64,000 bases of DNA from contig OZ260665.1 of the NCBI GenBank assembly GCA_965285935.1, positions 46,438,001 through 46,502,000 on the forward strand. Reading direction: 5' to 3'. A program made the translations under genes and the position numbers. This stretch comes from Ophelia neglecta. Lineage: Eukaryota. Of this stretch, positions 9,864 through 60,450 are shown in pieces. Numbering within the stretch: position 1 is the first letter of the stretch; each line of letters begins with the position of its first letter. Below the pieces are notes generated by a model. It was given only the letters and a program-made list of their open reading frames with translations, had not been told where the DNA came from and did no database searches.

Positions 9864-12800
9864 GAGTGGACTCACTGACTTAAACCTTTCCCAGGATACT
9901 AGTGATTAATTTTGTCTACAATAAGTAGCATTTACTATATTTATCAGAGGAATAGTTCCAGCTCATAGGTCAGATAGAGATATTATAGGGCAAGCAGACT
10001 TGATGAGTACTTCATGTTTGTTTTGGTCAACAATCCTCCTGCTGATAGATGTAGCTAGCCTGGGTTCTAAGGTGGCCTAAATCCATGAACAATTCAATGA
10101 AGATGCATTCAATGACCAAACCATTTCCCACATATTGCTAAATTTAGCCTATATCCACTTGATGAACAGTGCTCAAGAAACAAACTGCAGATCTCATACA
10201 TTAGAAGAAATTTTCAGTGTGCCAAAATAATTTGCCAATTCTACAAGTTGATGGTACAAGTACATGTATGTTTAAACTTTACTTCTTTTGTGGTTTGTGC
10301 AAAAGGTTAATCTCACATGCATATTCAGGTTTAAATTCAATGTCTTCATATTTGTAAGCAGGTAATTTTTTATTGCCTTTTGTGTAACATCTTCCCAAGA
10401 GGGCACTGAAGTCTGTTCCCCCACACTGTAAGGAAATGGGTACTATGTTATTATTTAACTTTCTGTGCTAGGTACTTAACCTAATAGTAGTCCTTGTTAT
10501 TCTGAATGCATGCAATAGACTGTGACCAGCCACTGTGACCAGCTGTGTATTATCTTATAAGATTAATCTTTGGCATGAAACAGAAGAAAGAAAAGTTTAA
10601 TGGGACATTATAACATTGCTCCCACAATACATCAAGGGTTAGTCTTTAAAATAATAATCTATCTAGTGCACTATCTTGCACTGCACCATGACTGACCATT
10701 TTGATAAGAAATCTATTGCATGTCTATAATAATAGTGCAAACTACATGGGATACCAGTCAATTTGTGTAAGCTTAGGACAAGTTTACCCAGCCTCCCACT
10801 GTGGACAGGTGCAGTGGATGTCCAGATATGCCATGTACCTCTTCTAATTTCTTCTGGGGGTGGAGTTCTATGATAGCTTCATTTAGTTTGATTGGTTATA
10901 ATTTGGTGCATCATGGTGAGCAGGTATGCCAATGCTGTAGGCTTGCTATCTGCTGACAGTGTCAGCAATTTAAATATCACTTAATTGTTGTCCTCCATAC
11001 TTGTAGCATGTTGTCACTGTTATTGGACAGTAGATATATGAGCATATACTTGTCTAACCCTGGAGGTATCAGTTCCAGACTTTCTTGGTTGCTAGTTCCC
11101 AAATTCTTCAAATGTATTAGGTATAATATATGGCTGGTTATAAAAGTTTCCTCCTTAGAGTAAAGAGTGGGCATTGTATTGAGTGGGTATTTTCTGCTCT
11201 TAATGCCTTTATGATATAGGAGGCTCAGACAGAATGGGCGTTCAAAGAATACAGGAGCATCTGCAAGAACCACTGTTGTCTTTTAACAGGTCAGAGGCCA
11301 AGTCAAACTTATCATAAGAGCGTCTGAACACTCTGTGCCAGAGACTGGCATACCTTCCCTATTTTTGAAGTTACATGGGCCATACTCCCATGGATGTCAA
11401 ATTAAGTACACCCTACAAGTTGTGTTATGATGTTGTGATGCCTATAAGACAGTTTTATGTCGCTATATGTATATGTGTGCTGAGTTTGACCAGGTTCATG
11501 GCATGGATGAATGCTGCTATCATCACCAAACACTGTTTACTATGTTGAGATACAGTCATGGAGCCTCTGAAATGGTTTATATATAATGTACAACATTTAT
11601 ACATCATGTGCATGTTTTCAACAAAATCAATTTTCTGCTGTGTTCCAAAACCTAAAATGTGAATCTTATAAAACATTGATTTTGAGATGGAAACCTGCAG
11701 GAAACACCTCTCTGGGATAATTGTAGCAAGATGCTTCCTTCTGTGGTATTTACTCTCAAAATGTTACATCTGCATTGATTAACATTAAAGGTTTTTACAA
11801 TTTCATCTGTGCAGCTGTTTGCAATCATAACATAGTTTAAATTGCATGCAGTCAGTTGATATGATGTATAACTGAGTATGAAGGGAGGTGTGACCTTGAG
11901 GCCCTACCTATCACATATTTTGTTTGGGTCACTGCCTGTAGAAGTCATTACACAGCTCAGATGGTGAGAGTTCAGCTTGGTGTCCAGCCAGACAGATATA
12001 TACCTTAGCTCCTGAATGGCCGTGGTGTGGCCATGAGCTGTTTGGGTTAAGACTCCTCTCATGATCCCTGGAGGATTAGGCACAGCAAGGGTCACCTCAA
12101 ATCAACAAGGATTTACTCCTGCTTTCTAGGTTATAAAGCATGACTTGGAAAGCAAGTCATACAAAGACGCTTCTCAGATGCCTCTAATTCCTTTAATTCC
12201 TTTCATTCTTTTTCTCTTTGCTTACTACGTAATGATTAGTTTCCAGCTTTCCAAGTGATTGGTTAATGGTATACTTTGTTGCTGTTTAGCTCTGTTTGAT
12301 TGTGCAGCTCTTTCTGACATTGAGAAGGAACCCCTGCTGCCTAGTGCTCTTTCCCCACTGCCATCAAATGCTTTGCTGATCTCTTGTACTGTGCTCTCCT
12401 ACTCATCTGCCTCAACCAAGCTATGACTAGCTTTACAAAACTTCTGGAATTTCCTCAGAACTCCCTGAGCTCCTGAGACCTGAGAGCTGTAGGTGGTATA
12501 TCTTAGTATCTCAAAGATGATTCCAATTATAATAATTGATGTGTTTGGGCTTTATTATAGGTGCTGATAGGAATGAAATATATGGTGATGCTGTTGCCTG
12601 GGGTGGCAAGGAAGAGTGTGACAGACAGTGATAGCCACCCTGCAGGAAGGGCAGGGAGGGTGGGGGGTGACACACCCCCAGGGGCATCCCTCTGTCCCTG
12701 TGTCAGCATCAACACTAACCTGACAGTGGTCACCGATGATAGCATTATGAGATCCAATTACTGACACCTCTTCTAAACTGTCAGCTTATGATAATTTGAA

Positions 12801-32665: not shown

Positions 32666-34966
32666 GTTAGTTTTTATATGTTTGCATTAAATCATATACT
32701 GTCCTTTTCAATACATTATATATATATTTCCATTAATATTTTTTTATCTATGTATATATTTACATACATGTACATGTAAGTACAATTTGGTAATTTAAAT
32801 ACTTAAGTAACATTTCTTTAATATCTGTTTCAATTAACTGATGATTTTCACCCAATTGCTATTTATGTAGTTAAACCTCTTATAATCAGCTGCCTTTAGC
32901 CTGATGTTAATATACTTATGTCAGCCAGACCCATATGATATGATTGACTAGAAAACTGATAATAGCCCAGTCCTGGGTTTGAAGCCCACTTGATCAGGCC
33001 TGAAGCATACCAGATTCACGATGGCTTCGCCTGGGCATGTATTGGCCGATCAAAACCCAGCCCATGCATCTCATGTTATTCTTCTATTTGCCTTGTTTGC
33101 CAGACGTGACTTATGAACATAATATTTCACATTTTGTCCCATTTTGCTGCTGAATGGACTGTCTGGTGAAATTCATGTTTGTTTTCACAAATCGCTTGCT
33201 CTTGCGGATGTGCAGCCTTTAGCCTCTTACACACTGCTGACAGTAGTGCGGCTATCAGCTCCTATCCTACCCTCTATATCTTTGTATAAGAAGTTCTCAG
33301 TGTGCTTTTTGGCCACCCACCCAGATGGTATCAAATAAAGCAACCAGCATTGGTTCAGCATCTTTGTGTTTATGAATTTCAAACCCTGTCACTGAGAATC
33401 TGTCATCAAGGGGGGATGGCTGAAAATCTCAAATGACTTTGAATTAAACCAAATGCTTTAAGTTGGCTGCCATCTCATGCAAATTAGTTCAAACAATAGG
33501 TTGGTTGGCTGCTGAATTTACCTTTGCGAGGGTATTTGGTGGCAAACACTTTCAGCCGTGTGTTTGTAAATGTGTACACTCAGCAGAGCATTCAGCTGTC
33601 AAGGTTTACAACTAAAACCAAACCTAAATGTATGCTTATTCTTGTAGCAAGCACAATTATTAAATTTCAGAGAAGTTTAAAGCCTAAACCTGTGCTCTCT
33701 GTTTGAATGAGTATATTCTGTCATAATCATTCAGCCTTGAGATGGAATTTCTTGCACACCAAGGTTTACGCACAGTAGGAAAAAAACTTCCGCTGATATT
33801 GTAACATTATCATGCTAAGCAAACACAAGTGAGCATAATATCGAGTTTTGGGGGATAACTTGGCCCAGGATGAGATTGCTCCACTAGTATTGATTTTTGG
33901 CCACCACAGCCACCTCGCTCAATTTATTTTTCTCGGTTATAATAGACAGAAAGGCACATCCTGTGGATAAGGGCTTAATCAGTACCAAACAATAATTGTG
34001 AACATTATTAAAGGGATATTCAGAATTAATCAGTATATTACTAGATTGTCTCTAGAAATGCATTTATTCATGAAACTTTTCCAAGTGCTGTTTTTTAACT
34101 TGAGTAATGTGTAATTGGAGTTGAATAGATCTTCATTTAGTAGCTGCCCTCCCTGTGGGGTCAACCCTAGTTACTTTAATGACTAGTTGATTTGCTAAAC
34201 AGACCTTTGCAACAGATCTAGCAAATTAAGTTCATGTTGAGGTAAAATACAATTTGAGGTGATATTTACTGACTCTATTGGCTTAGCTCAAGGACTAATT
34301 TAGGGTCAGGGTTGGTTAGTGAGATGATCGATTGGTGAATGGGACAAAGCAGTGTATTAAAGCAGCATTATTTGTTCATGAATTTACATGTAACCTTCCA
34401 AATGGATAGTCTCCTGAAGCAACCTGTCTGTTGTCCAGACTTGACCCTTTTTAACCTTCTTTTTTCACATTATGTCCATCAAGTTGTGTTTGTTATGCAG
34501 TGTGAGGAGTTTTGATGAATGCACCCTTGACCTTCTTCACAGAACGACCACACTCCTACTTGACAGGGTCCTCCCTGCCTAATTGCAGCCTCAATCTTTT
34601 CAGGACTAGCCAGACCCTGTTTTCAGATTAGCCAGGCCAAACATTTTTGTCATTGAAGTATAAAGGCAATTATTGATACAAGTTATTTATTGCATGAGAC
34701 TGGACATGACAGACTTGTGAACAATTCTGTATCATTGTGCAAATGTCCTGCATGACTTGATACTTTGGCTAAACAATATTTAGCAGCGCTTGTTCCACCA
34801 TTAAGGGTACAATTTGGCATTGATCTGTATTAGTTTCTGTACATCCCTTGCATGTATAGTCATACAAGAAAATTAATACTAGACAGGCATGAGAGTAGGC
34901 ATGCTTATTAGGTCAAATGTATCAAAAATGTGTAAACATGGATCAATTGAAGATGACCTGGTCCCC

Positions 34967-35107
34967 GGTCCACTGACAGAGTATGGTCCACTGACAGAGT
35001 CTGGTCCACCGACAGAGTCTGGTCGTCTGACAGAGTCTGGTCCACCGACAGAGTCTGGTCCACTGACAGAGTCTGGTCCACTGACAGAGTCTGGTCCACT
35101 GACAGAG
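34967..35107. repeat. 18-bp minisatellite, ~8 copies (GGTCCACTGACAGAGTCT)
   Basis: Direct tandem repeats; they generate the repetitive ORFs GPLTES, DQTLSV and QWTRLC. Confidence 0.95.
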
Positions 35108-35574
35108 GCAGTTGATGATAAGGAGGCTCACACCTTCAATTGTAATATTTGGCAACAAACAAAACCAGTGGAATAGCTCGCTATCACAATTAATAATATG
35201 CTAGGACAATATTTATCACTGCCCACCATGTACATCTGGGCTTTATTAACAGGCAGAGGTTTCCCATATCCTTTGTGGACTGTTGTTTGCAGCCATGTTT
35301 TATATATTGGGAATGAAACAATGTCTTTGGCTTGCTTGAGGTTAAATCACTTGTTAAGGTGCTATTATTGCATGTAATATACACATGCATCCCTGTGCAA
35401 TCCATAATATTTTGTACAAACTGTAGCCATTATTTGTAACATCAATAGATTCAATACTACAGTGAGAGGTCATCGGGTATTAATTTGGTCTGTCAACTGT
35501 CCTTTCTCATACACAAATGGTGGTTGTTTACCAATGGTCCCTAGGGTTAATAAATATTTCTTTGTTTTTTTTAG

Positions 35575-35958
35575 GGGACATAGTGGACCCAGCCCCAGGA
35601 GGCGAGTATGTGGAGGGTACACCTATATTCTATCAGGAGCCTGATGAGAACTATTACATTGTTAAAAACAAACCAGTGACTATAATGTGCATAGCATCAC
35701 CAGCAGTGCAGATAAACTTCAGATGTTCAGACCAATGGGTTCGACCCACCCATTTGATGACAGTGGCCATCAGGGACCCAGAGACAAATGTAAAGAAACT
35801 CCAGACAAGTATAGATGTGACAAGAGAAGAGGTGGAGCATGTGAAGGAGGATTTCGGGACTGACGTTTACTGGTGTGAGTGCCAAGCCTGGAACAGCCAG
35901 TCCAACCTCACCCAACCCCGCTCAGCCAAAAGTAGACGAGGGATCATTCAAGTAGCAT
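35575..35958 (+). CDS. unc-5: UNC-5 Ig-like domain 1 exon (384 nt, phase 1-1): (G)DIVDPAPGGEYVEGTPIFYQEPDENYYIVKNKPVTIMC...YWCECQAWNSQ...RRGIIQVA(Y)
   Basis: Inside ORF 35517..35966. Acceptor tttttttag|GG, donor GCAT|gtaagt. UNC-5 Ig1 motifs present. Confidence 0.95.
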
Positions 35959-38900: not shown

Positions 38901-41900
38901 CCAGCTTTTTTCTCTCTCAGACTGTACAGTCAAAAGAAACATCATACTTATAAATTTACCACCACAGTGTAACCTGCTGGGAGACACAATCACTGTTAGT
39001 CTACCCTTGTGGTGCGTGTAACTTGTGTTAAATACAAATATGCCCTTCCATTGAAAAGGCTTGTTTAGTTCACAAAAGAAAAACTAATATACAACATAAG
39101 CACATTCTTTAATGTTGTGAAAATCTAAACTTGTTGATAAAGCTACCAAGCCCCAGTTCAATGAAGGTTGTGTGGTGAGTGCTAATAAAAATTGATGAAT
39201 TATTTCAATAAGTTGATCCTTCCCTGTGTGCATGTGGGTTCCTTTGTCAGTTGCCCCCACTAAACAGTGTGACTGTCATGGAAGTTAATAGAAAAACCAG
39301 TACAATTTATGAAGTTGTTGGTAGACATATGAGAGACACCCTGTTGAGCATGACAAATTGTGCCTATTTGTTGCACACTTACATCTCTTTTTGCTTGCTG
39401 TCTTTTTGGGTGAAATGGTGGAACAAGAATGTACAAAAATTTAAATGAACAATTAGAAGCTTCAATATGTACAACTTCGATATACACTGGCTTCAAAATA
39501 TACTGCGGTATATATTTCACATTATTTGCTCAATTGTAATCACACTTGTTGTATAACACATATTATTTAGATAAATCCTTCAGGTTTTTTTCCTGTTTGC
39601 TTTGGCACTTGTTTTAGGTTGTTTTTCTTTCCACACTTTTGTGAAGTTAAGTAAATATTAGTTATTTCATTTCTTTGTTGTGGGCATCTACTAAATGGCT
39701 GCCACTTGGAGTTGTTATTCACAATGAAATTGATAATCAAAAGGCCTTTGTATGGCCACAGCCGGGGATGGTGCTATTGATGTAGAACACTTCTCATCAA
39801 ATAAAACAAGGCTGGCACATTTAAATGTACTCCACAAAAAAGACCTATCTCAATAGCAATGCTTTTGATGAGGAATGTATCATTTGAGACAAAGCCATTT
39901 CTGTGAAAATAGATGGGCTTCACACCAGTCATGAGCTATAGGGAATGGTTGTTTTCATTATTGACATTTTAAACACCTGTTTAATTCATAATTTCATGGT
40001 CCTTCATCTAGTATGATCATGCCAGTTTTGTTTTGTCCAATTTTTGAAGATCTCTTTTCTTCTTATATCTAAAGCTTAGGATATCCGTCAATAAGCTTTT
40101 TTTTACTTGAATTGAATTCTGATCAATGAATTTAAAAAAAAATTGGTACTTGCCTATACGTGTAGTACGTTTTTTCATTAAGATTAAACTTTCATTTTGA
40201 CATTTAAATTGCTCACTATTCCATGTATTATTTTCTGATTGAAGGAATAAATTTAATGAACTTCAGTGCATGTCAGTGCTAGCATGTTTCATACAGTGAT
40301 ATCAGACCTGTTTTTGGGATGGTAGAACAATATGATCAGGTGTGTGTTTCTGGTTGTGAACACCTGGGTGGCAAAACAACAGAGGTTACTCTATATGGGT
40401 AACTTGGGTCCATGGGCAAACACCAAGGGTGATTATATATCACACTGGCAGGCCTGTGCACTGACCCTGGCCACTGTCATTTTCTGCTAGGCGTAGAAAA
40501 GGAGGGCAGATTTGCCGCTGGCAGAATCGAGACAAAGATGCGAACCTTGTAAGCAGTAATTTTAGAAGACCCAATGCTGAGTCTGTGTGTGATCTTAATC
40601 GCTGTGGGAAAGATTGAGCTAAAGATTGCATGTGCCTGACTAAGAAAGTTTTAAAGAAAGTAGAGAATAATGGCTTATTAGCATGCAGATAGTGGAATAT
40701 TTCAACTGATAAGGCTAGCTTTGGCATCTGGGTAACAATAAGGTCCGCAGATGCAGAAGCTAATAGACAGATTGACCAGTCATGAAAGGCTGCAAATTGC
40801 ATGCTAGATTCTGCTGTCAGATTTTACTGATTGTCAAGTTACTAGGCTCGTTTTGGGATTAATTCTCCACATTATGCGCATGGTTTGTATATATAAACCA
40901 TGTAAACCTAGTACATAATGTAAATATAAATTTACTCGTGATTCATATGTTTACCCATCCATTTCTGGTTGAACACCCTAAGTACCATCAATGATAACCC
41001 CCTTAATGGTAGTGTTGAGTAATGTAGAAGGGGGGCATCATTTACCCATAGGAGGCATTGACAGAGACTGCAATTATCTTTGTCTATCTCTAGTGGGTGT
41101 GAAATTAAGATTGTTTAATCCAAGGGGGGTAACATTTTGTATTGTTCACTTTTAGGCAGATAGAATTCCACCCACTACCAATCCTGTTTGAAATTCTTTA
41201 TGCATTTGTATTGTGTCATTTCAGAATGATCATAATGATAATTAGCAGTGGTCAGTTGACAAGTTGAACTGGGAATGGTCATTACATCCTATGGTCTAAC
41301 ACAATACAACTGCATCCAGCATTTATACCCCATTGACTTAAGCCAATAATTAGCAGCTATGTATTCAGGTGTGTAAGGTATAATCAACAGCCCTCTATAC
41401 AGACTGGCTGCATGACCGTTACCTGCTAGACTAAGCTGCAGTGTCAGCACGCCTTTCATTCTGTCACTAAATCCTTCACGACAAGCATACTATGGGTTTT
41501 GATTGTGTCACCAGCTTTACTTTTTCTTTGAGTTTAGAAGCATCCCGTAATTTGAAAAGGGCAATGTTTCAGTCATGTAATACCTGTGCAACCTACCCAT
41601 TTATCTCCTAATCTGCCTCTGTCCAAAGCTCCTCAATGGTATTCTGTGATGCTACATTCTAAGAGGCGCCTAGCAGGAAGTCACTCACCAAGTGCTCGTT
41701 TGGATATGGACCATCCAGGTTAGCCTGGTTTGCCACTGTGTGAGGAGCATTCTTCCTATCCACACATTCAATGAGTGTAATGGTCTCTAATCAGCTTAAA
41801 GATTCCCAAATGAAGTCAAATTGGCCTTCTGATTCAATGTCAATAAAAGGCAAGCACTCCTGTTGCTTGAGGCCATCTCCAGAAGTGATTCACAGCTCGG

Positions 41901-43070
41901 CCGAAGCCACCATTGGCCTGCTTATTGAAAACAGAGCTGACTGAAAAAAGCAAAGAACACTCGTCTTCACTTGACTATTGTAATATCATGTAGGCATGGT
42001 CTAGCAATTAAAGTACAGATATGAAATTTGATTGTTAGTGATTTATGTATGATAACTTAATGCCTGCCAATATAATTTACCCCTAGGGCAGCAGTACTTG
42101 ATGTACCATGTGCAACATGAAAATGATTAACTACACTACTTAATATACTAGTATACAGTAGAAAATACTGAATTAAATGGAAAATAGAGACACTCCAAAT
42201 AGAATGGGTCATTCATGCCACTTATGAATTACCCGATTTTCATAAATAATATCAATTGACTCCCAGTTGGAATACAAATTATAGCTTCCTTGATTCCCAG
42301 TGGTTTCATTTGTCAAGTTTGCAATGGTTCAGTTCCAGTAAATTTCTAGAAATGCCGAACCAAAGAGGCATTCCCAAAAATTGTATTGATTGAACTTTGC
42401 TCTCACTGGGGATCTGCAAATCTATTTTCTAGTCCATCCTGCCCAATCAAGTGGAATACATCAACTATCATTCAGCTAATATCAGCAAATGTCACCATCA
42501 GAGGGAATACTTGGTATAGGACAAGATCCTGGAGATAAGAATTCCAATAGATTTCTATGTCCTGATAGCCAGCCACAGCTTTGCTCATTTGCCTCCCTCC
42601 TTTCTGCCCGTCTTGGCAATTTGTCTTTTGATGCCTGTGATGTTCCTTGCTTGGAAGGGGACTGCACTTGCCATCCGATTGCCATCTACTGAAGCAGGAA
42701 CAAGCGAGGAATTGACTACGGGCTTGTCCAAGTTCCAATATCTCAAACACTTCATATTAGTTGTGTATGGAAAAATGGGTCCTAACAGATGAAAAATCAC
42801 TTCCACAATCAAAACTAGAGGAAATAATTGGGATATTTTTTATTCAAAAGAATGAAATATTGACTGATATAAACATTATGTATTGTGTATCACATCAATG
42901 TCAATGGTTTACAGTGTCTGCATGGTTATTAAAAAAGAACAGAAATTAGCCATTTGGATAATAATTGCTTTTCAAACAATTTGCAGAGGAGAGCCCCAAA
43001 TTGGTGAGAAGCCATGTGTGTCTATAAATGTGTTTGCCATTTTATTTTCAGATTTATAACTGCCTGTAGG

Positions 43071-43300: not shown

Positions 43301-43798
43301 AACATTGAAACCAGGATCACTTTGTTACATAAACCCAATGTACTTAATCACTCAAATCCATAAAGATGTTCAGCTATTGATCTCTCTCACTCACCCCCCA
43401 AAAAAATCTGCTGTTGAATATGCATTGCCTTCCATCAATTTATGTCGCTCATTGTTTTGTCGAGATCAAGACAGTATAACTAATTTGTGAAGGATATGAA
43501 TTACAAATAGCTGTTAAAGATGGGTTTTACATTTTCCTTGTGTGCTTTTAATACAGACAGTTATTAACTCTTATTTGATCTTCGTGACTGGTGATGACTG
43601 TATTTACATTAATGACAATGGATACCAAATGGCAGTGACAGACATCGCATGTATCACAATATTATAATAAGAAGCAAAATTATACTGACTACTTTTTTTT
43701 CGACTATTTATCGATTGTCTATTAGCTTGAATGCAATCCAATTAGCACTGCTTTATTTGCAATGGTTTTATGCCTTCTATTTTGTAATTGTTTTTCAG

Positions 43799-43902
43799 AC
43801 CTTCGTAAGCGTTTTGAGAGGGAACCCATGACAACGAGGGTAGAGCCAGCCTCTCAGGCACAGTTACTCTGCCTACCTCCATTGGGACTGCCAACGCCTC
43901 AG
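43799..43902 (+). CDS. unc-5: UNC-5 Ig2 N-terminal half, alternative exon A (104 nt, phase 1-0): (Y)LRKRFEREPMTTRVEPASQAQLLCLPPLGLPTPQ
   Basis: Acceptor tttttcag|AC, donor CAG|gtttgt. Completes the Tyr codon from the Ig1 exon and reads in frame into VFWLKDG. Confidence 0.92.
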
Positions 43903-43952
43903 GTTTGTCTCTCACCTCACCCACTTATTCAACCCTATTTTACCCTTTTCAG

Positions 43953-44056
43953 ATATACGTAAACGCTTTGAGCGAGAACCAATAAACACAGCAGTGCAGG
44001 CAGAACATGCTACCCAACTGCAATGCTTACCTCCTGTTGGCTTACCAGAACCTGAG
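43953..44056 (+). CDS. unc-5: UNC-5 Ig2 N-terminal half, alternative exon B (104 nt, phase 1-0): (Y)IRKRFEREPINTAVQAEHATQLQCLPPVGLPEPE
   Basis: Not in the ORF track; translated by hand. Acceptor ccttttcag|AT, donor GAG|gtttgt. Same length and phases as exon A, no stop codon, conserved Ig Cys. Confidence 0.92.
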
Positions 44057-45864
44057 GTTTGTTTTTATTAACCTTCTTGCACTTCCCAAAATGTTCACAC
44101 CAGGTTTCATGATAATGTCTTCCAATTTATAACCCTTCAGACTGACAAATAACTTGACTTTAAGATATTATAATCCGATTAGTGTTCCAGATTAATCAAG
44201 TTCTGTCTAAATGATATATTGATCTGGGCTGACTGGTGCCTGCATTTCTATCAATCCTTGCACATGCTTCTTACTATTGTTGGTACTGGGGTGCTCATCA
44301 TTGGGGATGGACAATAGTTTGCTTTATTTAATCAACTTATATAAGTATCTATTAAATCTGTTTCAATCCTGCATTGCATATGTTCTATTTCCATGGCATT
44401 GTGTTAAACTGTTTATTATGATTATTACGCTCCTATGATTTTCAATAATATACATATATTCTGTTGACAATCAGCCATGAGATTGTTACATATCATTGTT
44501 TCAAACAATGGTTTCATAAAACACACACTTGTTGGTATTCTGTGCAGAAGAATGCTTCTCTGCATGAGAGCAGATCAATGCACATAGAAGAAAATCATCT
44601 CGACATAATCTCATAAACGTCACAAAGCCAATCTGAATCCACAAATCATTACCAGCTCAGAGATCAGTACCGGATCATCCATGAATAAACATTGAATTGT
44701 GTTGTGGGTTTATCCACAGCGTGTGCCCCCACAGAGCCCTACTAAAAAATCACAGTCTAATGAAGCATAGTCGTTATTGATCAAGTTGGCTAATTAAGCT
44801 TGAAGTTGTCTGGAGATGTAATTTCATGGACTCTTGCCCCGTCATTGTAGGGTTAAAGTCCTATTGAGGGCTGAACTGAATGTGAATGGGAGCATTACAA
44901 AGGTGGTTGGATGCTTTTAGAGCCAGTTGCTTGTTACTCTTCAATACTCAGAACTTGTGGAGTGATGGTAAAGATGACCTTGACACTGCAGCTTATGGGT
45001 CACTGCCTTGGAGATTAATATTAATGTAATGACATTGTCTGGCACAGATATAGATGCCGAACAATGCCAGCATTCAAAAATGGAAGCTGACCTCCAATCT
45101 CTCAGGACTTCTCTTATGCCATCACCCCTGTGTGACCTAGTGATCAACTCTTGCTTCATATTTTTGGTTTCAAGTGCTTGAAAAAATATTGACCCCATCT
45201 AAATTTTGAAGCTGTCTTGCATTTAGTTGTCAGCTCACCTGCTTACCTTGTTTGAACGTCAGCTGTAGATCAGCAGAGATCTCTGCACCTGAACTGGAGT
45301 GTTTGTCCTCTCTACCGCTGCTCTCCTTCACCCAACAAGAGGATCAAGTTAAAGAGCTGACACAAGTGGACCTAAGTAAGAGCCTGTTGGCTTATGCTAA
45401 TCTAGGCCTAAATCAATGATGAACGCAACCATTTCAACATATGAAAAACTAATATTTTCTATTTGAGCTCAGCCTGGCATTAATCCTTTGTGACACAACA
45501 AATCTCTTTATCATTCAGCAGTAAAGGTGAGGAGACCTGCTCAAAATACCAGAATTATTCACATTTTAGAGTTACAGGACTTAAAAAGAACAGTTTGTTT
45601 GAGTTTTGCCATAGCCTCCCCCCCCCCCCTCCCCCTCCCAGAGACTTAGTACTGAGATCCAGTGAGTCATATGGGGACATGAAAGGAAACAATTTTCTAA
45701 AATCTAGAATGAATTTTATGAGTAAAATTATTATGAACTACTGGTATATGGTGAGCTTGTGTCTCTTGTTTGACATTTAGTTTTATTATGTAAGTGATTT
45801 ACTAACTGTCTGGCCAAAAAAAACCTGATCCCAGGAATGTGGCTGTGTTTCCCTACACTGAATA

Positions 45865-46042
45865 CAGTGGTCCCTGCGATGTAGGGCCACCCCTCAATCC
45901 CAGGAAAAGTAGCCCTACATTGCAGGTGGCCCTTCATCAGAGGTATTTTAACATGGAATAGATAGGACATGGGAATTCAAAAACTGTCCAGCCATCGCAG
46001 GTTACCCTTCATGGGAGGGGCCCTACATCGCAGGGACCACTG
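45865..46042. mobile_element. MITE, Tc1/mariner-pogo (Tigger-like), 178 bp
   Basis: Perfect 24-bp terminal inverted repeats CAGTGGTCCCTGCGATGTAGGGCC ... GGCCCTACATCGCAGGGACCACTG, with TA on both sides (45863-4, 46043-4). A partial TIR-like copy lies inside. Confidence 0.9.
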
Positions 46043-48619
46043 TACTAGGTGATCAAAATAATAAAAAGCTAATGGACAAAATTTAACACAAGTTACATGT
46101 TCTTAGCCTGAAGCCCACTCTTAAGCGAAATATCAGTATACACACAGTGAAATTGCCCCAAACTATAGACAGCAAAAATATGTGATTGCTGAAACAGACT
46201 TTCGTCTAGAATTTCATGGTTCCATTTTCACACATCCTGGAAAATGTTAATTTTTCAAAAAAAGTAACAAACTTCACCTGAGTTGACATGCTGCAAAGTT
46301 TGCATTGGGGAAACAGTGTCTTTCCCACAGTTTTGCAGCAGAGGAAACAAGAAAATCAGTAAATAAACAACTGTCTACATTTCTGCTCTCACAAGCTTTG
46401 TGAGCTGATAGCATTGCATCTCATTAATGTCTAGGTGTAGTCAGCTTCTGGTGAACGCCACAAAACAAAAAATTGAGAGTTTATAAATTGACTAGATTTA
46501 CAACTTGCAAGTGCTTTAAACGCCGGCTGCCTACTGAGGGCTTCACAAGTGCTGCTTGTCTAGGACAAAGGTGTGAACATTGCAATATAAAGGCCTCTCA
46601 TTATCACTGTATCCAACTTCCTTGCAGTTGGCTTCATTGTTGCATGTCAAGCCGGTCACCCTGCAGGGCACAATAACCATTTAATGTGTGTGTTTTTGCC
46701 TCCAAGCTTGACACCAACTAGATCTCTCCTCCTGAGGTGTTACAAAGTGCATGGCCCAGGTGGTAGGTGTGACCTGAAGAGACTTCTAGTGGGCCAGGGC
46801 TAGTATTTTGCCATCAGAGGGGCTGTAGATTGTAAACTATCAAGATGATTTCAAGCTACACATGGCTTTTTGTTGGGAGAAAAAAACCAAGTCTTGATGG
46901 CTGGAGTGATCTTTTACATACTCTAAGCACTGAATTCAATGCATTTAGTCATGTAATATACCCTGATTGTAACACCAACAGAATTGTACTGTTCTAATGG
47001 GCCCATCTTGAAGAAGTTTTGTGTACTTCAAGCCTTACTATAGTGACACTTGTGAATATATTGAAATAGAAATTATTATTAAATGAACGGAAATATCCAA
47101 CATGTTTGAATACATCAATACCATGTAATACTTTCAGGGAATAAAACGTCACCATTCAAGTACAACTTTTATTAATGTTTTTTGTCAAATTGATAGTTAA
47201 GTATTTCAATTTGAAGATAATTGGCCCACATGTTTCAAATATTCCATTCATTTGAAAGTAGTGTAGGATTCCTTTATTAAGTGGAAAATGACAAGTAGAT
47301 CAAAACAGGAAGCAATTTGTATTATTCCATCTACCTTTTGATTGGAGAACAAACCTTTAATTTTGGCAAAGCAGGTGTTTAATCGAGTCAAATTGGAGCT
47401 TGTAATAAATGCAGTATTGTATGTCCAGGTGGAAGGGGTTGGGGAGGGGAGGGTTTGTTTGATCGGGAGGGAAGGGCTTGTTTGAGCGCAGACGTCTGTC
47501 CCATCCTCCCGCTATGACCTAGCAGATGGTTGCCACCAGATCTACAGGAACAAGATCAAAACCTAGCAGATCTCCCGTTGCCTAATTACTTAATTGTGGT
47601 CTTTGTTCTGTCCATTTTTATTTCATATTTGGCCATTTCCAATAGATTTATGATATAAGAGAATTGTCCAGCTCCCTTATTAGTTCCTTATTACAGGAAA
47701 TTCACACAAATTGAAAATTACTGCTGTTTAATCATCATGTGATTGCTTTGGGTGTCTGCTAGTTGCACATTAAAGTTGAGCTTCTCTTGCACTTACTCTG
47801 ACCATTTTATTGAGTACTGATCCAAGGGATGTATGGACCAATCCAGAAGTGACTGAGTTAAGAAAATATCAAATCACTCATAATGTATACATGATTGATT
47901 TCGTTTATTTGTCTCATTCTGATGGCAGTTTGCATAGTTGTCTGTGCAAAACTGCTTTGCTATTTATACATCTCCACTTCACCGAAATGTAAGTGGTTTA
48001 AAACAGAATGCCTCAGGCTATTGGGAATCAACATCAATTGATGGGGCAAAATTGGATCATCTGCCATTTATGGTTGTCTTAAAAGCACAAACAGTTTCAT
48101 GCTCACCATTTTAACTTAATGAAAACTAAATTGAAACAATCAAGTACTAAATTCACTTAAAACCTGGACATCATGCATTGTTGACTCTGGGGTTTAAGCA
48201 CTATTGTACTTTCATCTAGCACAACAGCCTGTGGCTATAAGCTGGTAAATTGTCCTTGTCCCATTCTGTTTTATTCGGATGGAACTGATTTGCTCTGTTT
48301 AATCCATACTCAGACAATATGTTCTAATCGCAGCCCTGGGCCAAGCACAAAACAAGATTGTTCCTTTATGTAATGGAACCAAACTACTGCCAGCGTCATC
48401 TAAAGTATCACGCAAACTTAAATGTGCTATGACAAGTTTACCTCATTCCATATAATAACTATTCTTAAAGTAGTGAAACCCTCACATGTGAAACAATGAA
48501 ATTTCAAAAATGAAACGTTATCGTGCCTTCATAAATTAATGTCATCCTAAATCTTGCTGTAGGATGGTAATCCTATATGTTTTGCTCCTCAATAATCATC
48601 CTTGTGTGTGTGTTTTCAG

Positions 48620-48800
48620 GTGTTCTGGCTGAAAGATGGGGAGATGATTGATGTGGAAAAAGAGATCAACTACATCATCTCCAACGAGGGAAACCTCATC
48701 ATCAACCAGGCCCGGCTGGAGGACATGGGCAACTACACATGCGGGGCTCAAAACATGGCCAGTCGCAGGTTGAGCGAGTCTGCCACTCTCACTGTCTATG
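48620..48800 (+). CDS. unc-5: UNC-5 Ig2 C-terminal half exon (181 nt, phase 0-1): VFWLKDGEMIDVEKEINYIISNEGNLIINQARLEDMGNYTCGAQNMASRRLSESATLTVY
   Basis: Acceptor tgttttcag|GTG, donor TATG|gtaagt. I-set motifs W-x-K-D-G and D-x-G-x-Y-x-C. Confidence 0.96.
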
Positions 48801-51594
48801 GTAAGTATCCAGACATCATTTTAGATGATTCTTATAGAATCAAAAAGTTGCCCTTACCATGTGTCTTTATGGTATGCTGTTGTCATGTTTGTGATGAGTT
48901 CCGTCCAGCCAAGCCTGCTGCTAATGATTTCAAATTCAGCTCCTGGATTGGGTCTCTTCCCTCAAGTGTCTTTATGCAAACATTTGTTGCAGATCAATAC
49001 GATCTGGAGACTTGTGATATATTTCCTGGATATGGCCTTAAAGCCAACTGTGAGATGGATATCTGGAGCTGAGGGGCAGGCTAACAGCTTCAAATGATGG
49101 ATTTTGTGTGTTTCAGTAATGTTATGACACGGCTTTGTTACTAAGACAGAGTAGTCTGCAAGGACAATGACTTTAACTCTAATATCACAAGTCACTTTGG
49201 AAGTAGAGAAGGGCTTGCTGGCACTTAATTATAGCACATGTTACTGTTAGAATGTTTGCTCTAAATTTGCTTAAACATAGAAAAGGTGATGAGTTACCTG
49301 TTGTGATTTAAGTACAAAAAATGGAACAGAGTAAATAAACACCTTATTTTTTATGTGTTAAAATGGCGGTGATTTTAATCCAATTTTCATTGCTTTCACT
49401 GAATGAATCCAAATTAAAGGTTACTTGGCTCACCTCTGGCGTTTGCAATTTCCCCAACTGTTCATTTTAGGGACCAGCTTATTTGCCAAGTGTCACAAAT
49501 TTGAAGCTTTTTCAGAACCTGATTCAGCAATCCAATTTCCACTCACATGCCCACATTTAGTGTGAAGGATATTAAACTTTTCCTCTCATAGGGCACTCAT
49601 GCTAAGGACCAGGCCTTAGGTCCACAGCTATACCAACTTGTTCATTGCCAGTCTTGCTTGCTACTAGCCACATGGGCCATTATTAGAGAAAGATTTATTG
49701 TGCTGTTTTGAAAACTTGATTATGACATGGCATTCGAAGTATTTGATGTGAAATAAATGTAATCGACCAAAATTATTAAACATTTAGCAATGGTCAGAAA
49801 CAGCACCATTCTGAGTGTCTGGATCTGCTTCAATTAGCCAGTTCAAGTGGATAACCTAATAAGGGTACTGTCACCCAATGAAATAAGTGATAATTAATAT
49901 AATTATCATGATGCAGACTGTGGTAGCAATGAGTGGAGTAATGAGTGTAATGTGATTCAGAAGACACCTGTTAATTTCCCCATGGAGATGTGGAATGCCA
50001 ATTTTGGCTTCATCCAGCTATCTAAGCTTGAAATGGTCGTCTGAGTCATCTGTGTCAGTCAGAAGTTCCTCCAACATGCTCAGCAGCCAGCACTAACTCC
50101 AATTCATTGTACAAACCCTGTCTTCTGTCCAAAGTCTTTAATTAGCCTTGGTCACTGGGTAGCATCCCACATAACTGTATTATAGTTATCATAGACTGAT
50201 TGATAGTATTCATATTTAGCTTTCCCAAAACTCAGAGGAGATGTTAGTAAAGGATTCAGCCATCAATACTTGACAATTCCCTTTACGCTAACCACCTAGT
50301 CTTCTGTTGATATATCTTTCACAGTGATCATCTTTTACCTGGGAACCCATAACTGTTTATTAGGTGTGCTCGCATCCTTACACTGGTCCATGTACATGAA
50401 CATAGAAAATATTATGTTTATTCTACACAAAGAATCCATGTAATTTGAGGCAAAATGTTATAACCTTGCAAATGAGCTGCTAATTCTACTTGGAAGACAT
50501 CAATATTGCTTTTTGGCAACTGTTAATTGTAGCTGTTACACTAGTCATTAGTAACTCATTATTTTGGAGAAAAGTTGTTAAACAAGTGATAATCTGGTGG
50601 AGTAATCAGACAATAGGCTGTGATGTAAGTTGAAGCTGCATTGTCAATACTATTTAGCATGTAAATTAGAATTAATCTGCTGTGCAAACAGAAATTGTAA
50701 ATGAGTAATGAAGGATTCTTTTTATTCCTGAGAATCTACACCTGATCCTTCTCTAACAGTCACCAGCAAACTTACTTTATTCAACATGAGAGATGAACAA
50801 GCACTGAAGTTATGGAAAAAAGCAACTGTAAACTTATGCAGTTTTTGTTACATCAAGTTGCTAAAAAAAAAAAGTCTGTTGAGATGAGATGTAGTCTTTA
50901 ATTTTACTGATGATTTAATGAGTCATGGTCGGCCAAATCAGTGTCTTTTCTAACAGAATAACTTAAGATCTTGAATTGCAGATAACTCTGGTTGTTTTGC
51001 TTCAGGTTTTCCCCTTGCAATGTTGACCGCTCAATCAAAATTTGTGCATGATTCCTCTCTATTCCAAGTATTTAGCATAAGTTGTAATATGAGATTGTGA
51101 AATATTAGAGAACAAAATTAATTGTTTAAATTGACTGCTGTGAAATATGGATATGCTTGCGCACGCTGTGTAAAGTTTACTGAGTATTGCAGTCATCTGT
51201 TAGACTTGAGATATGAACATTCCCAGTGGTCTCTCCCCAGAGCAGGCCTCATTGTTGACACCTGTTCAGTTGTAGTTCAGGTGAGTTGGTGAGGTAGAAA
51301 TCATTGACTTGTGTGCCAACTCCTGCTGCTGCCTGACACAGTGTTTGAGCAGTTGGTGACAGAGGACAGAGATCCATTTGGCCATGCCTTCTCTTATTGT
51401 CTTTATGGCACAAGTCATGTTATACTCGGGCTATGTCAACACCTTTGGGCTAGCTGTGGGTATCTCAATGAATTTGACAACTTGAAGTTATGACAAATTT
51501 CAATTAATTATGTTAGCTTAAAAAAGCAAACATTTGTCCTTATGAACATCTGTTGCCACTCTTTCACCAAATATTGATAATTTTGCTAGCAGGT

Positions 51595-51647: not shown

Positions 51648-53910
51648 ATTATTTTTACATCTCAGCTCATCAATGGTTCATCGGCCAATGCTTATCTCGT
51701 TTCACCTTGAATTGTCCATGTCAGTGGCAAGCAAGTTTGTCTTTCATGGCAATTCTTTTAACCTAAGTCTGGAATGGTAATCTTAAGCCAATGCAAAAAG
51801 GACCATTCAGTCCTCTGAAAACTTCAGCAGGGTAGCCCACAAAACTGTCACTTGACTAGACCAATGAAAACGTTTGCCCACAGTGTGCTAAGAACACATT
51901 CCGATTCTCAAAGTTGAGAACAGATTAGTCTAGGGTTTCCCAAATAAACCAACAATGTACATTGGCTTTATTCTACCAAATGTGTACATAGCTACTTAAA
52001 CCTCAGATCTGAGGCAATCAACAGATTTCCGTGTAAAGACGTTGTGATTGGCAAACACAAGAACTATGAAAAATAAATATTCACTTTAATCTGTGGTTTA
52101 CTTATGGTAACAAGGATTGTGCATTCAGTAAACAACATGACATCTTCATTATACTGTTGTCACTCATTGGCTAGGGTTGACATGCATGATATGTCAGCTT
52201 TAGATCAATTTTATTTTATTATTCAAGCCATTTCTGACTTCTTACAGCATTAAAAAGTGTATTTAAATGTATGGGTTCTGGTTAACTGAGACGCAGGAAT
52301 ATAAAGCTCATCAGGCTGCCCTGCTGATTCCTCTAAAACTTGGATTACAGTTGAGTTCAGAGACAAGCTAACATTCACCTGTACTTTATGAAGGCTTAGG
52401 ACAGGTCTTCAGAACATCAAGTCATGAGACATGCATCAGGCCAAACCTCAGGATTGGAAATGTCTTGAAGACAGGGCAGACAGTTTGGTTATTCAGGGAT
52501 CATAGTTATTTCTTCAGGAAGAAACATTAAATACTATTGTAGGGACGGGGAAAGTTCCTAATAAACATCCCATATTAATTTTTTTATCATTCCAAATTTA
52601 ATGTTTAAATGGATATGTCGATGACACCAAGACTGAACATAACATTTGACAATGTTGAACACATCCTGAATTAAACAATTCTAAATTAGATGGAATTTAA
52701 GTTAGACCAAATCCCTGCATAACATAAAATTGGACATATATAAAATGATATTGATCCTAGGGTAAGAACACTTTAGTTAAACATACAACTTCCATAGACT
52801 CTACATACCTTATACACTCATTCAGTCAATTATGGTACAGTTTGTGTAGCAGTTCACATGTGGGCTATTCATAACTATAGGGGCAATATGAAATGTTGCT
52901 GATCTTAAAAATAATATAAGTACTAGCCTTCTATGTCAGAGGATGATATTGTTAAGCTTGAAGAATTCTTTGATATCTAGATCCTATCAAGTCAATTTGT
53001 AACAGGCTTGGCTATAATACTGGCAATGATGTTGATTTCATGATGTATCATTCTGGTTTGCTCGTCCTTCAGGATTAGCTGGTGCTCCTAACTGATTTTT
53101 AATAACAATTAAGGTCACATAATGGCCCTTTCACCCTTTGAGTAGACCACATATGGCTCCTGTGTTTTCACAGTTTTGTTCTGCTCTGAATAACCTGATA
53201 TAAAAATAATGAGTTAATTTTCCATGACATCATCAATTGAATTCTCCATGTATAGTAGAATAGGGATGTATAGATAGAGTGGAGAGAAATGGAAACCTAA
53301 CTGCAGTCAGGGTGATGTCCCTTGAGTGCCATGCATGAGATCCTATTGTTGCTGTTCAGCATCCCTTATTGGCCCCTAAATTAATCCCAATGGGGTCAAT
53401 AGTGGTAGCCTTGATAGCAGTCTAATTCCGATTGAACTGCAGTCAGGTAAATGAATTGCAATATTGACTTAGGGGATGATTTTGCCAACTGATAACATTA
53501 GTAAATCCATTTGAATATTTGAAATTACTTCATATCACTGAGGAGCCTCCGACAGAGAAGTTTTGTAGTTTTGTCATGCAAAAACTGGACCCATGTAATT
53601 ATATTATACTAAATTGTCAAATGCAGAGGAAATGAGAAGACATTCCTTTTAACAAATATGCCAGTGTAATTGGATTCTTCATACATAACAAACATTACTC
53701 TTTGGGGGAATGGATAGCATGTGAAAGGTTATGTATGCTAAATGTTATTGATCAGGTCATTACTATACACACTGGGAAATAGCCCAGTAGTTCAATCAGA
53801 AGTTAATCAAACTTCTTTGAGCCCTCCCTACTCACTTTTGAAGGTCCATAAGTTTGTTTTTTGAGTGTGTATGGTTTTTACAAATTAAAGATGTGTGGTT
53901 ATGTTTGCAG

Positions 53911-56369: not shown

Positions 56370-58289
56370 GGTTGCAACAAAACTAAATCTGTAAATGCTT
56401 AGATATATCTTGTTTGAAAATATGGATGGTTCGCTACAAATAACCTAGACATACCAGTACAGTTTGGCAATAGTTTGCAGATGATCAGAAACATAACATG
56501 CAAAAATGCAAATACACCTTTCATGTCACCATACAGGGAAACTTGAACTTGGCTTTTGTCTTGCAAGTTGATATCATCCATTCTTCACTTCAAGAAAATA
56601 TGACAAAGGGAAATTGCCACTTACCAGGGTTGCTGGGGATATGCTGATGCATTTTCCTACTTGTAATTTGATAACCTTTTGGTTTGGAATGCATGTCATT
56701 TGTGAATGCATTGTAGAGACCATTAGAAGCATGTTTATCAATAATTAAGTCCTAAGAAGCAGAAATATGATTCAGAGTGAATATATTCGATCCTGATTTA
56801 GTGCCCTTTTGAAGCTTGTTGAATTTTATAATTAAATCTGAATTGAATTACATTGAAAAGTATTATGATATTTTAAGTAGTGTATCATCTCTATTTCAGC
56901 TCTTTGATCATACTCTGATTTGTGTAGTTAAAATATGAAATCATACTTCCTACCTGATTATGTATTGTTTTCATTGATTTGACGTCAGTGAATGTTGATG
57001 ATAATGAGACTTGCCAATCTCCTCAGCTGCGTATTGAACCTGACATCTTCGGAGCAGTCTCTTCAGTTGTCTGAAAATGTCATTCCACATTCATTAGGCA
57101 GCTGATGAGAGGTGTGTCTAAATGCACACTGTTTTGTCTTGTGATTGTTTTTAAGAAAAGCACGCTAACCGGCCATAATAACACCTGTACTACTTATGGC
57201 TGGTAAAACCTGCATTTCATCTCACCCCCTCACTTACCCCTGCAGTCTCTTTTACCCTCCCTTGCTCTCACACAGATAAGGATTATAAGGAAAATCAGTT
57301 TGTAGACTCACACAGCTTAGGTAAGAACTCCTTACTGGGAGGTGTTAACGCCATCTGCCAAATGTCTTTGAGTAGGATCACCTATTAGTCAACTTGTTCT
57401 GTGTGGCTGAATGTTTTTTTTTCTTTTTTGCCAACATTACCATATGTCATCATTGTTGCTTTTCTTATTTTTTTATTGCTTTTATTTCTCAAATTAATGA
57501 CTTTGGCCATCAACTGACCATCTGCATTGCTCTCAGCAAAATAGGTTATGTGTTAAAAGTATTAAAATAACAACATTTTCTTTTTGAGAACATATAAGAT
57601 TTTAGTGTTTTACAATATAGTATTTCCTCTATTTTGTTTTATATGTCAGGGGCTTTTAGAAAAAAATGTTCATTTGCAATATTAACATTTGCTATATCTG
57701 ATTTTCAAACTTTTACATCTCATTCATTGAACTTGATTTACATGTATTAGGGAAACAAAGATATATTAACAAGTCACAGAAACAGTTCTTCTTGTGCAGT
57801 GATTGTATATATATATATATACATTTATGTAAGTGGGAATCCCATAAAGTAGATCACAATACATGACAGGCTTAATTAATGTCTTATGTCTTATTTCATT
57901 TCATATTGATTTTTTCCATCATGTAGTTTATCTAGTATCTCAATCATTCTCTTCTTTTTTGCCTTTAGACTTATCTGTTACTTCTTTTAAATGGTGATTG
58001 TTTTTTAGCTGTCATTGTGTTATCATTTAGTTTGATACTGAGCCCATGTGGATATTAATTAGCAATCATTTACCAAATTTAACTAATAGTACATTCATCC
58101 AATCAATGTACATTTTTTAAGTAATGATTTATAATGTGTTGTGTGAGGTTCCACATTCTACTGATTAAAAGATTAAAGAAGTTTGTGATCCGACTGAGGA
58201 TGACACTAGCACCCTCTGTCTGTTACTCCCCTAGCCTTGACCTATTTTTCACCATGGTGCCGAGTTTGATGTAGATTGTGTGTTTTCAG

Positions 58290-58451
58290 TAAACGGAGAC
58301 TGGTCCACCTGGTCCTCCTGGTCTACCTGTAGTCCCGACTGTAAACACCACCGTCGTCGACTGTGTGACAACCCCTCGCCCAGCCACGGAGGACAGTACT
58401 GCCCAGGAGGCGATCTTGACACCTCCAACTGTACTGGAGGCATGTGCCGAG
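58290..58451 (+). CDS. unc-5: UNC-5 thrombospondin type-1 repeat 2 exon (162 nt, phase 1-1): (V)NGDWSTWSSWSTCSPDCKHHRRRLCDNPSPSHGGQYCPGGDLDTSNCTGGMCR
   Basis: Acceptor tgttttcag|TA, donor GAG|gtaagc. WxxWxxW motif and UNC-5-type ending NCTGGMC. Confidence 0.96.
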
Positions 58452-59549
58452 GTAAGCCCACTACTCTCACTCTTTCAGTGATCAGCAAATCTGATCATTT
58501 ATTTTTTATTCTTGTATGATAAACACAAATGCTGTTTATGAGCATATCACTTTTCTCTGCTTCTAAAATACAGTATTGTGAGATTACTATTTTGCTGGAT
58601 AGTAAAGTTCAGTAGGTAGTTATTACTGAATGTCCTATGGATATTTAATGACAATATAATTCTCATGGTGCCTACTAAAAAAGTTTTATACATTATTAGG
58701 ATTTGCAAATTGCTTCCTTAATGTCCTGTTGCTTAGCACAAAATGCATGCAGTAAAAAAGTGACAGCTTACTGCCATATTGCTTCAAGTACAGCATACAC
58801 AGAGGAAATGGACAAAACTTAAAGCAACAAACACAGGTCAATTTGCCGTTGAATCTTCATGTACCAAAAGTTGAACAGCTGCATTTCCCCGTAGAATGGC
58901 CTTTTGGCTGATGTGCTGATATAAGTTTGAGAGCTTAAGGGACTTGAAGGGAGTATATATATGTGATCTTTATGACATTCTGTACAGACTAGAGACAGAA
59001 CTGTCAACATACACCTGCAGCAATTATTTTAATTTGTCACACCAGCCTTCAAGCACCCTTCGCGTCTGAGCATTGAGTAGGCAGTAAATGTCCAATAACT
59101 GACAGTATTATTGTACATGTTTGAAAATAAAGTACAGCAGGCACATTCTCAAGAGGAGCCAAATGACCAGTAGAACTGCCAGACATGTTACAATAATCAA
59201 CCAGGGTGTGAAATCAATTTTGCTACTGTTAGCTATCCATAAACAATATCAGGAAACTCATCACAAGTAATAAGATTCTAGGCTCTCTTGCATTGCTGCC
59301 AATTAAATCACACCCTCTTCACATTATATTGATGGTGGGAGTACCCTGTTTATGATACAGCCAGATAGGAGCCTAGGACTTTTATTACAGTTCCACACCA
59401 ATAAGGCAATTTCTGGCTCCACAGTGATCCAAAGCTCAAACTTATAAATATCATCAGAATCCCAGGCTGGCTAGATGAATGATAAGGCTGGCCGTCAGGG
59501 AGCCTCGATGGAAGTGGGTGTGTTTTTTACAATGACATTTACCAGATGG

Positions 59550-60450
59550 GCTGTCATGATGAGCCATTGTGAGTGTCTGATTGTTTCCCTGTGAGGTGTA
59601 CAGGGTTTTTAAGATGAGCCATTGTGAGTGTCTGATTGTTTCCCTGTGAGGTGTACAGGTTTTTTAAGATGAGCCATTGTGAGTGTCTGATTGTTTCCCT
59701 GTGAGGTGTACAGGTTTTTTAAGATGAGCCATTGTGAGTGTCTGATTGTTTCCCTGTGAGGTGTACAGGTTTTTTAAGATGAGCCATTGTGAGTGTCTGA
59801 TTGTTTCCCTGTGAGGTGTACAGGGTTTTTAAGATGAGCCATTGTGAGTGTCTGATTGTTTCCCTGTTAGTGTACAGGGTTTTTAAGATGAGCCATTGTG
59901 AGTGTCTGATTGTTTCCCTGTTAGTGTACAGGGTTTTTAAGATGAGCCATTGTGAGTGTCTGATTGTTTCCCTGTTAGTGTACAGGGTTTTTAAGATGAG
60001 CCATTGTGAGTGTCTGATTGTTTCCCTGTGAGGTGTACAGGTTTTTTAAGATGAGCCATTGTGAGTGTCTGATTGTTTCCCTGTGAGGTGTACAGGTTTT
60101 TTAAGATGAGCCATTGTGAGTGTCTGATTGTTTCCCTGTGAGGTGTACAGGTTTTTTAAGACGAGCCAATGTGAGTGTCTGATTGTTTCCCTGTGAGGTG
60201 TACAGGTTTTTTAAGATGAGCCATTTTGAGTGTCTGATAGTTTCCCTTCGAGGTGTACAGGGTTGTCATGATGAGCCATTTTGAGTGTCTGATAGTTTCC
60301 CTTCGAGGTGTCCAGGGTTTTTAAGATGAGCCCTTGTGAGTGGCTGTTCGTTTCCCTGTAAGGAGTACAGGGTTGTCATGATGAGTACAGAGTTGTCATG
60401 ATGAGCCTATATGAGTGGCTGATTGTTTCCCTGTGAGGTGTACAGGGTTT
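59550..60450. repeat. 55-bp minisatellite, ~16 copies, including three internal 54-bp variants
   Basis: Unit GATGAGCCATTGTGAGTGTCTGATTGTTTCCCTGTGAGGTGTACAGG(G/T)TTTTTAA starting at 59558, 59613, 59668, 59723, 59778, 59833, 59887, 59941, 59995, 60050 and onward; decays at the 3' end. Confidence 0.97.

Follow-up and report, generated by a model that had tools for sequence, protein, structure and literature searches.

In the window, the 64,000-nt stretch of DNA that we analysed, a single UNC5 gene carries two neighbouring exons, A and B, that encode alternative versions of the first half of its second immunoglobulin domain (Ig2). We think it likely that they are a genuine tandem-duplicated, mutually exclusive pair of coding exons. 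Because the pair is old, intact and also retained in a related species, whose copies (A' and B') lie on ENA contig L059, its sequence indicates that the gene very probably makes two versions of its receptor by either-or splicing. The parts of the gene that matter here are the following.

35565..35958, + strand: Ig1 exon (UNC5 N-terminal domain), from Pfam Unc5_NetrinR_N (E = 2.9e-28) and tblastn of residues 29-156 of transcript P0152; the 5' limit is homology-based
43799..43902, + strand: exon A, upstream alternative copy, 104 nt; ortholog at L059:5043-5146
43903..43952, + strand: spacer intron between A and B, 50 nt (70 nt in L059)
43953..44056, + strand: exon B, downstream copy, 104 nt; best match of all homologues; ortholog at L059:5217-5320, transcript L007/P0152
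47418..47490, + strand: G-tract run in the intron after exon B, conserved at L059 8903-8982; candidate regulatory element
48620..48800, + strand: constant exon, second half of Ig2 (strands C to G), Pfam I-set positions 31-90; 93% identical to P0152
53892..54077, + strand: first thrombospondin type 1 exon, Pfam TSP_1 (E = 8e-12) and tblastn; limits from homology
58289..58450, + strand: second thrombospondin type 1 exon, Pfam and tblastn; limits from homology

An earlier reading of these letters, made from the sequence only, had called the gene an UNC-5 netrin receptor, and Pfam domains, a genome-wide search and a transcript alignment all agree with that. By Pfam the gene encodes Unc5_NetrinR_N, an UNC5-type Ig1 domain (PF25609) that scores above the Pfam cut-off, then the second half of an I-set domain and two TSP_1 repeats. 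Across the assembly there is a single Ig1 match. P0152, the full-length transcript of a relative (P0952-class, 968 aa), carries ZU5, UPA and Death domains by Pfam and aligns with the contig exon by exon, in colinear order, from Ig1 to the last exon over ~57 kb. Its residues 368-968, which hold ZU5, UPA and Death, match the same contig in order at 66-95% identity, and these cytoplasmic-domain matches reach ~28.7 kb beyond the window end, where the remainder of UNC5 (transmembrane, ZU5, UPA, Death) lies. The gene is therefore a complete, single-copy UNC5 netrin-receptor gene. UNC5 receptors convert netrin attraction to repulsion, and from homology this one would bind netrin and mediate repulsion as well. 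The best Ig1 match among named species is to the annelid Capitella (60%), and the animal, an invertebrate, is probably an annelid.

The UNC5 introns also hold tandem repeats at 59457-60045 and 34882-35135, seen on both strands as peptide-like open frames that recur. At 45708-46075 there is a very high-copy repeat, where the summed word depth in DNA contigs rises from ~30 to 40,000-220,000 with many alternative joints.

Exons A and B read as first described: each is 104 nt long and in phase 1-0, and each is preceded by a pyrimidine tract and CAG and followed by GTTTGT. The Ig1 exon ends in phase 1 at 35958 with the donor GTAAGT, and the one T it leaves over completes a Tyr codon with the opening dinucleotide of whichever exon, A or B, follows. 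The constant exon starts in phase 0 at 48620, and its acceptor fits either alternative exon. The peptides are identical at 20 of 34 residues (59%), 12 of the 20 being written with different codons; our recount gave the same figures as the sequence-only reading. In nucleotides, 61 of 104 positions are identical (41% differ), and the differences fall on codon positions 1, 2 and 3 as 14/7/21. When exon A was compared with all six frames of the 762-Mb assembly, exon B was the only other real match (E = 1.2e-6), so the similarity of the two exceeds chance. Searches were run exon by exon. The identical donor, which the earlier reading had counted among the marks of the pair, is indeed present on both exons, but it is not specific to them: relatives having a single exon carry GTYTGY donors too, and the GTTTGT shared by A and B is ancestral.

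The second species came to light through a search with a natural Ig1-Ig2 fragment, which led to a short genomic open frame (P0353) and from it to the 41.5-kb contig L059. There A' (5043-5146) and B' (5217-5320) are separated by a 70-nt intron and followed, 4.8 kb downstream, by the constant exon (10100-10279). Both copies are again 104 nt long with intact AG acceptors and GTTTGT donors, so that in both species the neighbouring homologous copies agree in length and phase and have undamaged splice sites. From another run (ERR550532), transcript P0152 (L007) carries a B-type exon identical to B' at 96 of 102 nt, and for this reason we conclude that the B type is expressed in the P0152/L059 lineage. 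P0152 is the only transcript assembled from the clade. Between L059 5219-5320 and L007 1369-1470, exon B differs at 4 of 23 synonymous sites, compared with 22 of 38 in the next exon; this low synonymous change may reflect RNA-level selection on an alternative exon, or chance.

In the splicing scheme that we propose, the Ig1 donor at 35958 would be joined to A or to B, and the chosen exon to 48620. Because 104 nt is 3n+2, only messages that include a single copy can make receptor, and all others run into a stop within ~11-20 codons. With both exons included, a TAA follows after 10 codons; with both skipped, a TGA stands at codon 11; and when the 50-nt spacer is retained, the frame closes with the TAA at 43960-62. 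The rule that exactly one exon must be used, part of the original claim, thus holds for every combination. Faulty messages would presumably be removed by nonsense-mediated decay. The 50-nt spacer leaves ~35 nt or less from the A donor to any usable branch point, and so short a spacer may hinder splicing of A to B, by a steric exclusion of the kind known for alpha-tropomyosin exons 2 and 3; in L059 it is 70 nt long.

Which exon is used by default may be read from the acceptors. That of B has a strong and conserved pyrimidine tract, which lies in the spacer together with its likely branch region, and that of A is weaker, especially in L059. Since B has the stronger, conserved acceptor and the relative's transcript has the B form, B is probably the exon used by default, with A as the regulated alternative.

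A candidate for the regulation itself is the G-tract run 1.1 kb upstream of the constant exon, which is complementary to the spacer and the exon B acceptor, although not specifically. One way in which it could act is through a long-range duplex of 43924-43958 with 47418-47490 that hides the B acceptor, loops out B and favours A. Such a duplex would be compatible with a mutually exclusive pair, as a sub-hypothesis on its regulation, and we keep it as a lead while judging it unlikely. Within the 12.6 kb of flanking intron, the G-tract run is the best partner of the spacer (-38.9 kcal/mol, where the mean is -10.6 with sd 5.1), and the element in L059, a homologous block, is joint-best there (-48.0, next to -47.9 at L059 2471). 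The full structures reach -52.7 kcal/mol with 47 pairs in the window and -56.7 kcal/mol with 56 pairs in L059; on the acceptor side (43924-43958) most pairs persist at aligned positions, and 28 of the 47 pairs are unchanged. However, base composition accounts for most of this pairing, in which a pyrimidine tract faces G-runs: with dinucleotide shuffling the z-score is -2.3 for the window and just -0.5 to -1.4 for L059, and the G-tract element pairs better with other C-rich stretches of the pre-mRNA. We saw no compensatory changes, 11 pairs are broken in the 5' half, and the predicted register is not the same in both species. A second selector beside the other exon was not found. With weak z-scores, better partners and no covariation, the arrangement does not resemble the docking/selector pairs of the Dscam and 14-3-3 zeta type, and each side could be conserved for another reason, the one as branch region and pyrimidine tract and the other as G-run factor sites or a quadruplex. 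The element might instead be a G-run splicing-factor site or a quadruplex. A further contig, L060, has no G-tract homologue in the 2.7 kb upstream of its constant exon, an absence that says little, and no Rfam family matches between 36000 and 54000 in the window.

Other intronic sequence is shared with L059 as well. A block of ~95 nt at 41767-41893 (core 41776-41872; L059 3570-3695) is near-identical in the two species despite near-saturated synonymous sites. It is non-coding, rich in TAAT/ATTA-type motifs and without an Rfam match, and from its sequence it looks like a developmental enhancer in an UNC5 intron. Further colinear blocks lie at 39014-39361, 40427-40627, 40931-41277, 42173-42539, 44524-44866, 47358-47663, 48968-49113, 49823-50003 and 51841-52167, with 60-84% identity over 60-370 nt in three UNC5 introns. 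We considered whether such blocks are hidden exons and rejected this because their conservation extends over several frames and both strands.

The sequence-only reading had proposed an old duplication with both copies under protein-level constraint, and the comparisons support it. Between A and B, synonymous sites are 84% different (saturated) and non-synonymous sites 27%. We ran 20,000 neutral simulations that started from B and reached the same nucleotide divergence as separates A from B; on average they kept 10.5 of the 34 residues identical, none reached 20, and 75% of them acquired a stop. Against a family profile of 96 UNC5 exon peptides (family mean 84 bits), A scores 76.5, A' 76.7, B 83.2 and B' 78.0 bits, and the best simulated sequence scored 32.5. 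Exon A agrees with the family consensus at 12 of 12 well-conserved columns. Between the two species the synonymous distance is ~1 in neighbouring exons, and since their split non-synonymous change has stayed far below synonymous change in each exon: 0.27 and 0.76 for A vs A' (Fisher p = 2.8e-5, 34 codons), and 0.12 and 0.52 for B vs B' (p = 1.2e-4, 34 codons). Both copies have thus been kept as coding sequence in another species too. The A types change about twice as fast as the B types at non-synonymous sites (p = 0.02), and A' has an Ala at the otherwise invariant Pro of the C-x-P-P motif; it is for these reasons that the constraint on the A types is real yet looser than that on B.

This looser constraint could also mean that exon A makes no protein today and is either a recent relic or a 'poison' exon that lowers UNC5 through decay. 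The faster evolution of A and its weaker acceptor tract, especially in L059, would fit such a role, as would the early stop that follows when A and B are both included. Moreover, transcripts and every homologue show the B type only, and an open frame around exon A, used as a query, retrieved no A-type protein among 5.8 billion proteins. A poison or dead exon, however, has no need of a conserved peptide, and A and A' keep an open frame, splice sites, the length of 104 nt and (nearly) all conserved residues. The synonymous excess in A since the species split and the simulations, in which three quarters of the sequences hold a stop and none comes near the profile score of A, argue in the same direction. 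We regard a silent or poison exon A as improbable and return to the reading in which both exons code for receptor.

How old the pair is can be told from the residues that the copies share. In a tree of the 34 residues, a supported clade (98/92) unites B, B' and P0152, and A and A' sit on long, unplaced branches that are not joined. The B types have the derived residues I1, A13, Q15, H18, A19 and T20 in common, while A and A' retain the ancestral L1, E15 and S18. Both A types also have P16, which in other UNC5s is not one of the five most frequent residues of the column. Because the B types share derived residues that the A types lack, the sequences point to one duplication, before the B-specific changes and before the species split. 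In this scenario the exon would have been duplicated once in the common ancestor of this species and the L059 species, both copies being kept coding. As the tree leaves the A types unjoined, the orthology of A and A' rests on position and a few shared residues. It is hardly credible that the pair reflects an artefact of assembly or haplotypes, or that it arose independently in the two species, which the failure of the tree to place the A types might allow: contigs of three DNA runs each span both exons at flank depth, the copies differ at 41% of nucleotides, and after independent duplications both species would have had to revert in parallel at positions 1, 15 and 18.

The contigs in question are Logan contigs from three DNA runs of one sample; a search for sequencing runs turned up DNA of that sample and no RNA. 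Each covers 43500-45877 in one piece, with both copies in cis and a depth equal to that of the flanks, which rules out an assembly artefact, as the earlier reading had maintained on other grounds. Within the pair they differ only at 43824, a synonymous A>G in exon A.

Elsewhere we found one copy at a time. All homologues match exon B best. In metagenomes, 51 loci with animal UNC5 exons of several sequence types are single-copy where the contigs are genomic (a few, such as L009 and L018, are transcript contigs, which are silent on genomic copy number), and both flanking exons often lie on the same contig as the single exon. ENA contig L063 likewise has one copy; a weak match at L063:12473 was dismissed as a second copy, as it lacks splice sites. 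Annotated isoforms of nemertean, brachiopod, mollusc and chelicerate genes have one version of the exon per gene, and no alternative for it occurs in the isoform sets of Lineus, Lingula, oysters, mussels, abalones, Gigantopelta, Biomphalaria, Ruditapes, horseshoe crabs and scorpions. As far as we have seen, the exon pair is restricted to one lineage, in which two species are known to have it.

Three observations on repeated UNC5 sequence were made along the way. Loci L010-L058, animal host DNA in JGI metagenomes, comprise at least three types of UNC5 Ig2 exon, each at its own locus and each with a single exon, and UNC5 in the host lineage seems to have diversified through copies of the gene rather than of the exon. 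Proteins P0001, P0003-P0007, P0012 and P0017 (970-1,816 aa) have four to six stretches that resemble the UNC5 N-terminus, and at least three of them (P0001, P0006, P0017) also have repeated Ig2-like segments. In P0116, a vertebrate UNC5 prediction, part of the same exon is repeated directly after itself, which is probably a prediction or assembly artefact.

Where the two receptors would differ can be seen on an AlphaFold model of the natural homologue P0008, on which the fold was made (mean pLDDT 81, >90 in Ig2). It places the exon as follows.

Exon positions 1-9: linker and strand A
Exon positions 12-15: strand A'
Exon positions 16-19: A'-B turn
Exon positions 20-25: strand B
Exon positions 26-33: B-C loop

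The two proteins would differ only in what A and B encode: the linker from Ig1 to Ig2, strands A/A'/B, and the B-C loop of Ig2. The differences between A and B that are conserved by type fall at position 1 and positions 15-20. Both peptides match Ig2 in PDB structures of UNC5B and UNC5A. In the netrin-1/UNC5B crystal structure, contacts are made by the interdomain linkage and the A-B, B-D-E and A-G sheets of Ig2 (PMC13759497), and C. elegans UNC-5 has a conserved heparin site at the Ig1-Ig2 boundary as well as netrin contacts on Ig2 (PMC10871540). The swapped segment, which the sequence-only reading had put in a ligand-binding Ig domain, therefore lies in the netrin/heparin interface of published structures (PMC13759497, PMC10871540).

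Given that location, it is reasonable to expect different binding of netrin or heparan sulphate, and by analogy with these structures the likely effect would be two receptors that differ in ligand or co-factor (netrin/heparan-sulphate) binding. Charge follows no common trend: B had been described as more acidic, which is correct in this species (about -1, vs +2 for A) but not in the relative (about +1 for B' vs 0 for A'). It is tempting to go further and speculate that in this lineage of marine invertebrates splicing re-tunes the sole receptor for netrin repulsion, presenting Ig2 surfaces of different netrin and/or heparan-sulphate affinity by neuron or stage, with the choice set by pairing of the B acceptor with 47418-47490 (or by a G-quadruplex or G-run protein site there). 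That complete scenario strikes us as decidedly improbable. If both forms are expressed, they would make a natural minimal receptor pair, at most 14 residues apart and with ~6 positions type-consistent in both species, that helps to dissect what sets affinity for netrin and heparan sulphate.

Among known systems, the closest functional analogy is offered by vertebrate FGFR1-3, in which two homologous, mutually exclusive exons (IIIb/IIIc) encode half of a ligand-binding Ig domain. That swap has a proven effect on ligand specificity and is regulated by tissue. There, as putatively in UNC5, one gene for a single-pass receptor yields two ligand-binding forms. The gene families are unrelated, and FGFR1-3 swap the C-terminal half of Ig3 whereas the UNC5 pair swaps the N-terminal half of Ig2.

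The earlier reading had called the pair Dscam-like. With respect to position this is apt, as the exon 4 cluster of arthropod Dscam1 also consists of tandem exons, used singly, for the N-terminal half of Ig2 in a neuronal guidance receptor (PMC1397879). Scale and demonstrated mechanism differ, however: Dscam1 exon 4 has 12 variants and serves homophilic recognition, while UNC5 has 2 variants and is a receptor for a secreted cue. For Dscam clusters docking/selector RNA pairing has been described, and for UNC5 our evidence for an equivalent is inconclusive to negative.

In frame logic the UNC5 pair resembles clusters of C. elegans, where exons of equal, non-3n length also shift the frame when both are included or both skipped (PMC4165533). 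Nonsense-mediated decay is needed, at least in part, by 14 of 19 such two-exon clusters, and in some clusters the spacer is too short for excision (PMC4165533). The main text of that catalogue does not include unc-5 (PMC4165533).

Vertebrate UNC5A-D and the UNC5 types from metagenomes have the same domains as the gene described here and the same conserved intron positions around this exon (in phase 1 behind Ig1 and in phase 0 ahead of the C strand). In contrast, those lineages have whole-gene copies of UNC5 with one N-terminal Ig2 exon each, and here one gene has two exons. To our knowledge, known animals owe their UNC5 diversity to gene copies and to cassette exons in other parts of the protein. 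The sequence-only reading knew of no such exons in UNC-5 genes, and our search of the full-text literature likewise found no description of mutually exclusive or tandem-duplicated exons in UNC5 or netrin receptors. Tandem either-or exons, including those for Ig-domain halves, are well known from Dscam1 and the FGFRs; the UNC5 case is a new example, in which a single UNC5 gene could exchange just that portion of Ig2 which lies in the netrin/heparin interface. If both forms are expressed, it would be another case of an Ig-domain half swapped by splicing to alter ligand binding. And if the re-tuning of affinity and the RNA pairing were both true, the netrin pathway would have an FGFR-type ligand switch operated by a Dscam-type RNA mechanism.
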